A stretch of 64,000 nt of DNA from Hormiphora californensis (lineage: Eukaryota > Animalia > Ctenophora). Numbering within the stretch: position 1 is the first letter of the stretch; each line of letters opens with the position of its first letter. Positions 39,101 to 41,928 of the stretch are shown here, one piece after another. The position numbers and the translations under genes are program-made. The stretch lies in contig CM035357.1 of the NCBI GenBank assembly GCA_020137815.1, forward strand, positions 7,998,001 to 8,062,000, written 5' to 3'. The notes below the pieces were generated by a model. It made no database searches. It was not told where the DNA came from and saw nothing but the letters and a program-made list of their open reading frames with translations.

Positions 39101-41928
39101 CGGTCCACTACACGCACAACTCCCACATGGGACCGTAAGGTCCCATGCGAGAGCAGGGTTAAATCCCCCGAGCCCGGATCCCTCTCTCTCTCTCTCTCTC
39201 TCTCTCTCTCTCTCTCTCTCTCTCTCTCGGTCCACTACACGCACCACTCCCACATGGGGCCGTGAGGCCCCATGCGAGAGCAGGGTTAAATCCCCCGGAT
39301 CCTGTTGGATCTGAGGGCCCGGAGGGCCTGCGGAGTAAAGGTAGGGTAGGTAGAACAATGTACATACGGGTAAATTTAACAATGTACATATGGGTTAAGT
39401 AAAGGGGATGATATTAAAAAGGGGGAAGTAAAGTGGGATTAAAGCTCATGGTGACGGAGCACAAGACCTCCTAAACTATCTGCAAAGAAGCCCAATCTGC
39501 TACAATGAATTCTAAGAAGAGACAACTTATCAGGAACTGAAGAAGCAAACCGTCCGAATCTAAGGCAGCCTAAAACAAGCAGGAACGGGTTCGAGCGAAA
39601 AAAATAATAAATTAATACAAATGGATGATGATTACATGTCGAGCCAGAGAGGACAGCCAGCCCGTTCCAGAGAAGCCAGCTGACCCCGCTCCAGAGAAGA
39701 CAGCCGACCCCGTTCCAGAGAAGCCAGCTGACCCCGCTCCAGAGAAGCCAGCTGACCCCGTTCCAGAAAAGCCAGCTGACCCCGCCCCAGAGAAGTCAGC
39801 TGACCCCGCTCCAGAGAAGACAGCCACCCCGTTCCAGAAAAGACAGCTGACCCCGTTCCAGTAAGGACAGCTGACCCCGCTCCAGTAAAGACAGCTGACC
39901 CCGTTCCAGAGAAGACAGCTGACCCCGCTCCAGAGAAGACAGCTGACCCCGCTCCAGTAAAGACAGCTGACCCCGTTCCAGTAAAGACAGCTGACCCCGC
40001 TCCAGAGAGGACAGCCACCCCGCTCCAGAGAGGACAGCTGACCCCGCTCCAGTAAGGACAGCTGACCCCGCTCCAGTAAAGACAGCTGACCCCGCTCCAG
40101 AGAGGACAGCCACCCCGCTCCAGAGAGGACAGCCGACCCCGCTCCAGTAAGGACAGCCGACCCCGCTCCAGAGAGGACAGCCACCCCGTTCCAAAGAATC
40201 ATCTCCGATGATAGAACCCTATCAAAAATGGAAGAAGTGGGTTAGGGGGGCCAGCAGAACAAAAACAGTATTGGTTAGCGGGTTAGTGGATAAAGGGGCG
40301 TTGGGGGTCCACAGTTGGCTGGAAGATGCCTGTTCCACTGGTAACCCTGAGCCGGAGAAGGCGGGGTAGGAACGTAGTAGTTGGCGTTGATACACTGTGG
40401 GCCACCTAGCCTTGCCAAGATGTTTTTGTATTTTGTATTTTCTGATTTTTTTCCGTATTTCTGATACACAGCCACGCTCAGCCGCGGCCACACGGACCTG
40501 GAAATCGAACAGGGGGAAAAGGGGATGGGGAAAAAGGTACTCCGTGTGACCCCGTTGCCCGGGGGAAACCGATTGGAGGTGGTGGCAGGTGGACCAACTC
40601 CCCCCCTCTCTCTCTCTCTCTCTCTCTCTCTCTCTCACCTCAACATCGGCTTTAATCAGATCCCCAATGTCCGGTCCGTAGACAGTAAACACAAGTTCGC
40701 TTCCTCGAGCAAATATGTCATTTGTTTCACTATGAAGCCTACGTTTCGTCATTTTCCCTTTGTTTCCGAACAAAGTAACGAATACCTGAAGGGGGAAACT
40801 GTCAAATTTCAAATTATGATTTCGATATAATATAATAAATCGGTATTATATCCCAAGTGTGGGGTAGAATTCTTTGTTTTTTTAAGTTTCTTGATGATGT
40901 AAGCACTAAGCGTGAATATGTATATAAACTTCTCTCTTTCCCTCGAACTATCTTCTTCCCTTTATATTTCTCTCTGTTCCTCTATATGACTATTTAGAGA
41001 GGTTGCCATGGCGACCCCCTCCAAACGACTCTCTCTCTCTCTCTCTCTACCCGTAATTGCAGAGTCTACTACTGATGCTTCCGATGTCAGGTAATGGGAT
41101 ATACCATATTGTGCAGTCCTTGTGTCCAGGGGTATGGAGAGTGTGATTCAAAAGGGCATCACATTAATTGATAAAGAATCAGAGTATCACACATAAAACG
41201 ATTGAATAAATGTGTACTCGTTATGTATGTAGTACTGACCCTAGCATTAGTTCCAGCACCCTTAACATCGCCAGTTTTAACCGTCACGTGGTACTCCCTC
41301 CCTCCACCCGATCCACCATTAGTAACACTTCTGTTACTACGGACGCTGCTCGGCCGGGATGCGGGCCTCCCGCTCCCCTAAAAGATGATACACATGGTTA
41401 CGACAATTAAATATTAATTAATATCAATAATTAGTCATGATTACATTTAATTATGTTTCTGAGTTATAAACAATATATTTCTGAGTTACAAACAATATAT
41501 TTCTGAGTTTCAAACTTTCATCAACTACAACGTAAAACTATTTATTGAGGATGACCGTGAACTGTATGAGTCGAGTGCTGTAAATACACATATTTTGGGT
41601 GACAAGTCCCATGTTCACAGTAAACAGTTGTAGTACATGTTAATATGAAATGGTAACTAACCAGGGGAAGAGATCGACGTTTCTGGCAAGGTTGCTCTTG
41701 GAACTTCCTCTGGTAATATTGCTGCAGATGAGGGTCATTGAAAGAGTTGTATTCCGGCATTAGCACCTGTTTTCCTCTTTGTACCCGTGGATATGCTAGT
41801 TTTTCCGAGTGCGACTGCTCTATGGCACTGCGGGCTGCGTAGGGGAGGCTGGAGTGGCCGTCAGTGGACTGGTAGAGGTAAACATTGAATTTGTGACGTT
41901 TAGAATTCCGGATTGAGTCGGAATACAT
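18128..41928 (-). CDS. LOXHD1: Lipoxygenase homology (PLAT/LH2) domain-containing protein, ~17 PLAT repeats, many exons
   Basis: Repeated YxxxVxTGD..AGTDAxV...FERG..D.F...LG....IxHDN.G....W.L..V...F.C..W blocks in GT-AG-flanked exons from ~41377 to the large last exon 19447-18128. The putative first coding exon 41930-41662 (ATG 41928) is less certain. Confidence 0.92.
19490..19908. repeat. 26-bp purine-rich intronic minisatellite
   Basis: (gggagagttaagaagagagtgagagg)n. Confidence 0.95.
25326..26156. mobile_element. Non-autonomous DNA element, G-run termini, 8-bp TSD TCCCAATC
   Basis: TCCCAATC at 25318-25325 and 26157-26164; TIR gggggggggacatgttaatt; ttaacaaa-based 10-mer arrays. Confidence 0.92.
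26349..26520. mobile_element. Short Tc1/mariner-type MITE (same family as 11273-12139)
   Basis: Same TIR cagtcggaccccgatttaggg and TA TSD. Confidence 0.92.
27285..27745. repeat. 58-bp tandem repeat (~8 copies) overlapping a LOXHD1 exon end and splice donor
   Basis: Period of 58 (ggttactg at 27306, 27364, 27422...). Confidence 0.9.
28832..29012. repeat. (GACA)n microsatellite
   Basis: Direct reading. Confidence 0.98.
29625..30780. repeat. ~60-bp tandem repeat built from two ~30-bp subunits, split by an insertion at 30054-30623
   Basis: gattcgagaaaattttctcggtaagaaattgc / gattcggggaaatttttcgcttagaaaatac alternate. Confidence 0.85.
30054..30623. mobile_element. Non-autonomous DNA element, 8-bp TSD GAAATTTC, C-run right end
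   Basis: GAAATTTC at 30046-30053 and 30624-30631; ends ggaggctgaagtttttgaag / cttcaaaaacttcagccgcccccc; (aaaaacttc)n units. Confidence 0.85.
31140..31273. mobile_element. Right terminus of an element related to 10435-12364
   Basis: (tttttgtatt)n...cgtac...aaaataggttggaaccccccc resembles 12240-12364; no partner end with a matching TSD found. Confidence 0.65.
32163..33132 (-). pseudogene. Second LINE ORF1-like gene, frameshifted near 32500
   Basis: Coiled coil, [22 protein letters not shown] in one frame; KRLG...RPVKLRL...[18 protein letters not shown] in another; colinear with 747-1715. (TAT)n at ~31912-31927 may be its tail. Confidence 0.75.
33428..33572. repeat. (CT)n microsatellite
   Basis: Direct reading; other (CT)n tracts at ~37103-37170, 39022-39100, 39182-39227 and 40605-40636. 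Confidence 0.98.
39645..40195. repeat. 21/18-bp GC-rich minisatellite
   Basis: Variants of (ccagagaagacagctgaccccg(c/t)t)n. Confidence 0.93.
40471..40604 (-). ncRNA. HDV-like self-cleaving ribozyme (predicted)
   Basis: Minus strand: P1 GGGGGAG/UUCCCCC; P3 ACC/GGU closing a 7-nt L3 UCCAAUC; P1.1 CC/GG; GCAAC; P4 GGUCACACGGA/UCCGUGUGGCC; J4/2 C-U-G-A; P2 GCCAC/GUGGC. Confidence 0.7.

Follow-up and report, generated by a model that had tools for sequence, protein, structure and literature searches.

A putative HDV-type ribozyme at the head of a (GA)n-specific retrotransposon copy in a ctenophore intron

Among the retrotransposons without long terminal repeats (non-LTR retrotransposons) that carry a ribozyme of the hepatitis delta virus (HDV) type at their 5' end, the one nearest to the case discussed here is Dong of Bombyx mori, a (TAA)n-specific element of the R4 clade whose 5' HDV-like ribozyme has been verified, cuts at the element junction and leaves an upstream product of pure repeat (PMC3774820). 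R4, R2, RTE, Baggins and L1Tc carry such heads as well, and the short internally deleted elements (SIDEs) of R2 consist of the ribozyme and the 3' untranslated region (UTR) (PMC3774820). In this article, I compare these systems with a locus of the ctenophore Hormiphora californensis, found within 64,000 nucleotides (nt) of contig CM035357.1 (assembly GCA_020137815.1, positions 7,998,001 to 8,062,000 of the forward strand), the whole of which is called the window below and in which a sequence-only reading had placed an HDV-like ribozyme just inside an intron of a gene that it named LOXHD1. My conclusion is that positions 40606-40471 of the minus strand are the 5' head of a non-autonomous copy of a (GA)n-specific non-LTR retrotransposon, and that the HDV-type fold of this head most likely self-cleaves and frees the element RNA, a reading to which I would give a probability of roughly 60%.

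The sequence of events that this reading proposes is as follows. The element, which has no evident promoter of its own (none was sought), would be read within a host transcript, here through the intron of a PLAT-domain gene; its head would fold as an HDV-type nested double pseudoknot and cut the RNA at the junction of (GA)n and G-run, between A40607 and G40606, with C40481 acting as the general acid; and the cut would free an element RNA with a defined 5' end. Autonomous relatives, whose protein would recognize the 3' UTR that both kinds of element have in common, would then supply the reverse transcriptase and endonuclease that copy this RNA into a further (GA)n tract.

A (GA)n-specific family and its ORF-less members

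Genome-wide searches covered an assembly of 110.7 Mb in 45 contigs, 13 of them large. With the 151-nt head as query they returned 113 candidate places, the 40 scored ones being 99-100% identical, and a covariance-model search of the whole genome returned at least 115 heads, distributed over the 13 large contigs. Because the window head is 100% identical to many other copies (at least 15), the window insertion is, by this measure, recent. A (GA)n tract lies directly upstream of the head in 30 of 30 fetched copies, as it does in all 73 copies from a search anchored on 16 purines, a set whose pattern itself required those 16 purines upstream; (GA)n also lies downstream of the window copy, of a truncated copy beside it and of L032, one of the autonomous elements described below. 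Insertion is into one repeat type, (GA)n, in the manner of site-specific non-LTR retrotransposons. The sequence-only reading had noted that HDV-like ribozymes process the 5' ends of such elements, and in this it pointed the right way, since the head sits where they carry these ribozymes.

In the window, the head makes up the first ~136 nt (40606-40471) of a protein-less retrotransposon of 1,378 nt (40606-39229, minus strand, as are all element features below) that is flanked by (GA)n, and most head-bearing copies in the genome are this same element without an open reading frame (ORF). The same head also opens autonomous elements of ~6 kb (L031 and L032). To these the window copy is 93-94% identical over its first 390 nt (element positions 1-390), in which the head is followed by the rest of a common 5' UTR segment (40217-40470), and 82-83% identical over its last 415 nt (element positions 964-1378; 39229-39643), a tail derived from their 3' UTR that has the same ...GGACC end before (GA)n and, in the window, closes with ...GUAGUGGACC directly before the (GA)n on the element's 3' side (39183-39228). 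Between these two parts, in place of the autonomous ORF, stands a tandem array of a 24-nt unit (39646-40200) whose length varies between copies. No credible ORF was found in the window copy, which keeps head and 3' UTR as a SIDE does and which is, judging from these common ends, an internally deleted, non-autonomous derivative of the ~6-kb elements.

The ~6-kb elements have one ORF, with Myb-like N-terminal repeats (by eye), a reverse transcriptase that Pfam assigns to RVT_1 (E = 8e-27), a CCHC motif and a C-terminus of PD-(D/E)XK type, a combination in a single ORF that is the mark of the R2 superfamily; among proteins of solved structure, those of R2 retrotransposons come nearest to it (E = 5e-30) and match a second time over the endonuclease region, and open frames of 1,227-1,243 amino acids are intact in at least 15 places. 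On this protein evidence the family carries a restriction-like endonuclease of the R2 superfamily. It probably also belongs to the R4/Dong lineage, as suggested by marine-metagenome relatives of the ORF (~40% protein identity) that begin directly after (TAA)n-type repeats, a setting that fits a Dong-like lineage. The closest foreign relatives of the ORF reach 62-64% identity, the element sequence is present in marine metagenomes and metatranscriptomes, and a Protein Atlas search returned unnamed reverse-transcriptase clusters only.

The heads of the metagenome relatives did not fit the HDV descriptor, a relaxed version of which gave only scattered, chance-like matches, and no Rfam family matched them; they may represent a different 5'-processing device. 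The heads of L062, L064 and L067 (first ~120 nt) and those of L063 and L079 are conserved and clearly structured, with a compensating change of U-A to C-G in a hairpin between L063 and L079. In L060 and L065 the repeat is followed at once, within the first ~100 nt, by T-arm-like motifs, GGUUCAAUUCC and GUUCGAACCC, which recall a module resembling a transfer RNA (tRNA) at the 5' end; ARAGORN called no tRNA in these two heads.

A few further observations concern the copies themselves. A stretch of less than 10 kb (G000:C5:8535687-8545237) contains two autonomous copies in head-to-tail order (protein matches at 8537902 and 8542553), and in several cases (e.g., L003) a head comes immediately after the 3' end of another copy, which shows repeated insertion into the same (GA)n tract. 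In the window, a second, 5'-truncated copy of 81 nt (39102-39182, minus strand, 96% identical to 39179-39297) consists of no more than the final ~80 nt at the 3' end of the element and is followed by (GA)n at 39101-39022; with a (GA)n tract on either side, it has the typical form of a dead-on-arrival insertion into this same microsatellite, and its sequence is nearer to the 3' UTR variant of the autonomous elements. The array at 39646-40200 comprises ~23 copies of its unit and yields a spurious ORF of 196 amino acids (39612-40202) with an 8-residue repeat.

A double-pseudoknot fold conserved in two families

The fold is present on the minus strand where the sequence-only reading had drawn it, and every helix that it named was found again, together with L3, P1.1 and J4/2 (P, J and L standing for paired, joining and loop segments). 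The 5' strand of P1 reads GGGGGGG (40600-40606) in the preferred register, which follows the modal run of seven Gs and pairs fully in both families considered below; in the earlier register, P1 was GGGGGAG (40604-40598) with UUCCCCC (40567-40561), and starts at 40606, 40605 or 40604 are all possible. Next come J1/2 (40587-40599), a 13-nt linker that differs in length and sequence between the two families, and the 5' strand of P2 (40581-40586), composed of GCCAC (40586-40582) and C40581. P3, ACC with GGU (40568-40580), encloses L3, UCCAAUC (40577-40571), and is followed at once by the 3' strand of P1, UUCCCCC (40567-40561), and the GG (40560-40559) of P1.1 (together 40559-40567), so that C40576 and C40575 can pair with G40559 and G40560. 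P4 (40486-40551) has 11 base pairs (bp; 40551-40541 with 40496-40486), a loop of 44 nt and an energy of -19 kcal/mol, and the last segment (40471-40485) consists of J4/2 (GCGG-C40481-UGA) and the 3' strand of P2 (G40477, the bulged C40476 and GUGGC at 40475-40471), with a pair C40581-G40477 that extends P2 across the bulge to six pairs.

All elements of the HDV-like nested double pseudoknot, P1, P2, P3, P1.1 and P4, are here in canonical order, with P1' directly after P3'. A candidate catalytic C followed by N-R-A stands just before the 3' strand of P2 (C40481-U-G-A, or C-U-A-A in the other subfamily), and G+1 pairs with a pyrimidine, C40561, in every register, which makes it a G1-Y pair (PMC6326823) but not a wobble. 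With a strict descriptor (P1 7 bp, P3 3 bp, P1.1 2 bp, CNRA, P2 at least 5 bp, P4 at least 9 bp) the candidate is the only site matched in the window, whichever strand is searched.

Topology alone is weak evidence, because a looser descriptor (P4 at least 5 bp) already matches ~1.4 times per shuffled 64-kb strand, and the loose version finds ~8 distinct sites in the window; the fold taken by itself is suggestive, not compelling, and it is the context that decides. One could even ask whether the fold is a chance match in G/C-rich sequence flanking a repeat, considering that loose HDV descriptors match about once per 5-50 kb and that the nested minimum-free-energy (MFE) fold is no better than that of shuffles (z = 0.53). 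This idea is hardly credible given that the strict descriptor matched only twice in 24 dinucleotide shuffles (0.083 matches per 64-kb strand), that the match starts at the element's 5' boundary, and that a family whose protein identity is only 60% keeps the fold, its P4 being compensated. As to the z-score, plain MFE folding is uninformative here because the fold is pseudoknotted.

The main family is made up of two subfamilies (58 and 35 of the 93 listed copies), and all eight differences between their heads fall on unpaired positions: L4 has four of them, J4/2 two (C-U-G-A to C-U-A-A), and L3 and J1.1/4 one each. A second (GA)n-specific family, with two copies on contig 8 and the 60%-identical ORF, again has seven Gs after (GA)n; its P1' is UCCCCUC, it keeps P2, P3, the C-G pairs of P1.1 and C-U-G-A, its bulged C has become A, and its P4 is a helix of 9 bp with a 13-nt loop and a sequence unrelated to that of the main family. 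Pairs were counted in an alignment of seven sequences with 29 pairs (193 cells), for which the aligning model held P1, P3 and P4 only: 97.4% of the cells pair, as opposed to at most 49% with partners slid, and P2 and P1.1 are 100% paired although they were outside the aligning model. By this pairing record the HDV-type fold is conserved across two families, and the HDV/CPEB3-type topology of the sequence-only reading is borne out. In P4, four pairs differ at both partners between the families; the changes in P1 and P2 are limited to exchanges between G-C and G.U (the latter in three sequences for P2), and P3 is invariant across the two independent lineages. The genome-wide covariance-model search found no third family, its low scorers being decayed copies. 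In one copy, L145 (G000:C9:58843-59164), a run of ~30 Gs replaces the G-C-A-A-C linker between P1.1 and P4.

The predicted cut and the case for and against it

Over 73 junctions, the G-run before A-G-U-U-G-G has four Gs in 2 copies, five in 2, six in 16, seven in 41, eight in 7, nine in 2 and ten in 3. Since seven Gs are the modal run, and since P1 is fully paired in either family when it spans G40606-G40600 (the seven-G register) but has an A-C mismatch in the second when it starts at 40604, cleavage is predicted between A40607 and G40606, a site favoured over the 40604/40605 of the sequence-only reading. Unique upstream sequence transduced along with the element was seen in no copy. Of 93 copies, 91 have a C at position 40481, the one that would be catalytic, and the second family has it too. 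A transposing sub-lineage with A at this position was considered for the two other copies and rejected, since they share only 2 variants in 1.3 kb, the background level.

The RNA data consisted of 24 runs in the form of contigs, in which 40593-40647 was masked as repeat and RNA ends are not readable; sequence differences within the head among the RNA-library contigs are all in the P4 loop. One record (run X16, contig record 13, a marine metatranscriptome; 255 nt, depth 63) starts at ~40605 in the G-run, ~13 nt before 40592, and has no (GA)n.

Several points weigh against self-cleavage, and some of them would suit a rival explanation, namely that the head is a conserved 5' UTR RNA structure that has lost, or never had, this activity and works as a protein-binding site, as an element of translation or stability, or as an internal promoter starting at the G-run. 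The conserved U...C-G of L3 (the U.G reverse wobble, with G25 of HDV) was found in none of the L3 loops here: the main family has UCCAAUC (window copy) or UCCUAUC (other subfamily), and the second family GCCCAGU or GCCCAUU. At the wobble positions, the main family has U/U, and the second has G/G in its reference copy and G/U in the other one (L055). In the current view, the L3 guanine serves to position the catalytic metal ion. Published HDV descriptors fix this U...C-G along with G1-Y, two P1.1 C-G pairs and C-R-R-A (PMC6326823); in R2 ribozymes the L3 G is rigidly conserved, and a Nasonia ribozyme that loses it is dead (PMC3774820); with G25A, a Caenorhabditis briggsae ribozyme hardly cleaves any more (PMC13635239); and in antigenomic HDV, U/U is 290-fold and G/G 470-fold slower, these being two of only four active mutant combinations, and G/U is dead (PMC3386971). 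Given its non-canonical L3, the head, if it cuts, may be slow.

The remaining points of this kind are more diverse. The Rfam models of HDV type (HDV_ribozyme, CPEB3_ribozyme, drz-Agam and HDV-F-prausnitzii), most of which the sequence-only reading had named as a check, gave no match at E<=10, whether the search covered 2 kb, 156 nt or the head of the second family, and at the gathering score no ribozyme family was found among 20 loci. The two copies (of 93) with A at position 40481 nevertheless have normal 5' ends. With (GA)n at both source and target, annealing within the repeat could also produce uniform 5' junctions, and such junctions are no proof of an RNA end; moreover, two of three RNA-library contigs extend 26-29 nt into the upstream (GA)n. 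A competing nested fold reaches -48 kcal/mol, compared with a nearest-neighbour sum of ~-40 kcal/mol for the HDV helices, and covariation is limited to two lineages. On my own reading of the sequences, the hairpins of that competing fold have no counterpart in the second family.

A conserved structure without cleavage would accommodate the unusual L3, the silence of Rfam, the normal 5' ends of the two A-bearing copies and the uniform junctions, and heads can indeed have other roles, as in L1Tc, where 77 nt are both promoter and ribozyme (PMC3383444). What makes me think it unlikely, if far from negligible, is that both families preserve the positions by which an HDV active site is defined (C followed by U-R-A, two C-G pairs in P1.1 and the stacking of P3 on P2), whereas drift is seen in P4, J1/2 and L4, that the U/U and G/G of the reference copies are among the few combinations active in HDV (PMC3386971), and that the related Dong has a working ribozyme at the same place (PMC3774820); evidence for a promoter was neither sought nor found. 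Self-cleavage of the head is still the reading I prefer. It can be taken further, to a naturally active HDV-fold ribozyme that does without the L3 U.G reverse wobble and its guanine (with U/U or G/G instead), that drives a recently expanding (GA)n-specific family and whose sense intronic copies sever host pre-mRNAs behind the donor, and this extended version I put forward tentatively, at rather less than even odds.

The host intron and the known systems

The exon next to the insertion (40639-40785, minus strand) has 49 codons in phase 0 and covers the middle of a PLAT/LH2 domain, as read from its sequence and from Pfam PLAT. It is bordered by an acceptor AG (40787-40786) and, after the exon end ...GUUGAG, by a donor GT (40638-40637). 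Its match to Pfam PLAT (E = 0.0049, profile positions 19-65 of 117) is below the Pfam cut-off for one exon, and the neighbouring exons resemble, by eye, the start and end of the same PLAT domain; host exons were checked one by one. LOXHD1 is a plausible name for the host gene, the exon matching a PLAT domain only. The intron opens with GUGA and passes straight into the (GA)n tract (the GT and the tract occupying 40607-40638), which is the insertion target on the 5' side, and then into the seven Gs at 40606-40600; the element accounts for 1,378 of the 1,692 intron bases, and its head lies in sense orientation 31-33 nt inside the intron.

From this position the sequence-only reading had proposed a host intronic ribozyme after the example of mammalian CPEB3, that is, a regulatory device cutting the pre-mRNA just after the splice donor, and if the head is active, cutting of the nascent intron in this orientation and at this distance would be unavoidable. 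As a host device, though, the head is very improbable: CPEB3 is single-copy and conserved at one orthologous intron, whereas the head belongs to a mobile element of which the genome has at least 115 copies, its 100% identity with many others points to a recent insertion, most of the intron is the element itself, and there is no tie to this particular gene, a splice donor being found in the upstream flank of 1 of 30 fetched copies, namely the window copy only. The place of the head 31 nt behind a donor is an accident of where the (GA)n tract lies. Severing of the host intron, and with it the competition with splicing that the sequence-only reading had suggested, is then a possible side effect, which would presuppose ribozyme activity and whose harm would depend on the speed of cleavage relative to splicing.

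Neighbouring introns have further (GA)n tracts on the sense strand of the gene (33430-33570, 37100-37170 and 41030-41050 of the window, TC runs on the plus strand), and the one at 37092-37100 adjoins, on the plus strand, nine consecutive Cs that may be the scar of another head. The (GA)n-flanked segment 40900-41028 was considered as another element and rejected, its sequence being single-copy; single-copy sequence also follows the tract at 41030-41050.

For annotation, this means that the window site and ~100 others should carry the label of retrotransposon heads, which belong to a (GA)n-specific element and its ORF-less derivatives, and not that of host regulatory RNAs. For transposon biology, the design known from Dong, a microsatellite target combined with a 5' HDV-like ribozyme, would be extended to a new target repeat in a family that looks recently active. 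Those who study ribozymes would gain natural variants at the very L3 positions that mutagenesis has marked as nearly essential, and the host gene would offer a test of how harmful a ribozyme 31 nt behind a splice donor is, though only if the head is active and the insertion polymorphic.

Finally, how does the locus stand beside the known systems? Mammalian CPEB3 has the HDV-like fold, the sense orientation and the intronic location in common with it, and differs in being a single-copy sequence and not a recent insertion of a multi-copy mobile element. The order P1-P2-P3-L3-P1'-P1.1-P4-J4/2-P2' is that of the genomic and antigenomic HDV ribozymes, and the G-G-G-C-A-A-C after P1' is identical to that of genomic HDV. 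The C-U-A-A of the second main subfamily matches the C76-U77 start of J4/2 in antigenomic HDV (PMC3386971) and continues with two adenosines. Unlike HDV, the head has no L3 U.G reverse wobble, its first P1 pair is G-C instead of G.U (allowed as G1-Y, PMC6326823), J1/2 is 13 nt and L4 44 nt long, and Rfam does not match it.

The R2 SIDEs of Drosophila resemble the window copy in combining a ribozyme-type head with a 3' UTR and no ORF, the best solved relatives of the autonomous ORF are R2 proteins, and the 5' junctions vary by a few nt, as described for junction-cleaving R2 elements. In contrast, 28S rDNA is not the target here, the N-terminus showed Myb-like repeats alone (by eye) and no zinc finger, a tandem array of 24-nt units fills the middle of the window element, and the L3 G that is so rigidly conserved in R2 is absent. 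Dong, like the present family, is a non-LTR retrotransposon that inserts into a microsatellite and has an HDV-like head at its very 5' end, with the cut, predicted here, at the junction of repeat and element and an upstream product of pure repeat, again predicted only for the family described here; the ~40%-identity relatives of the present ORF lie in (TAA)n, as Dong does. The differences are that the target here is (GA)n instead of (TAA)n, that L3 is non-canonical, that cleavage is proposed from the fold and its conservation, and that the host is not an insect. The closest precedent is Dong, and what is new here is the (GA)n target repeat and the non-canonical L3.

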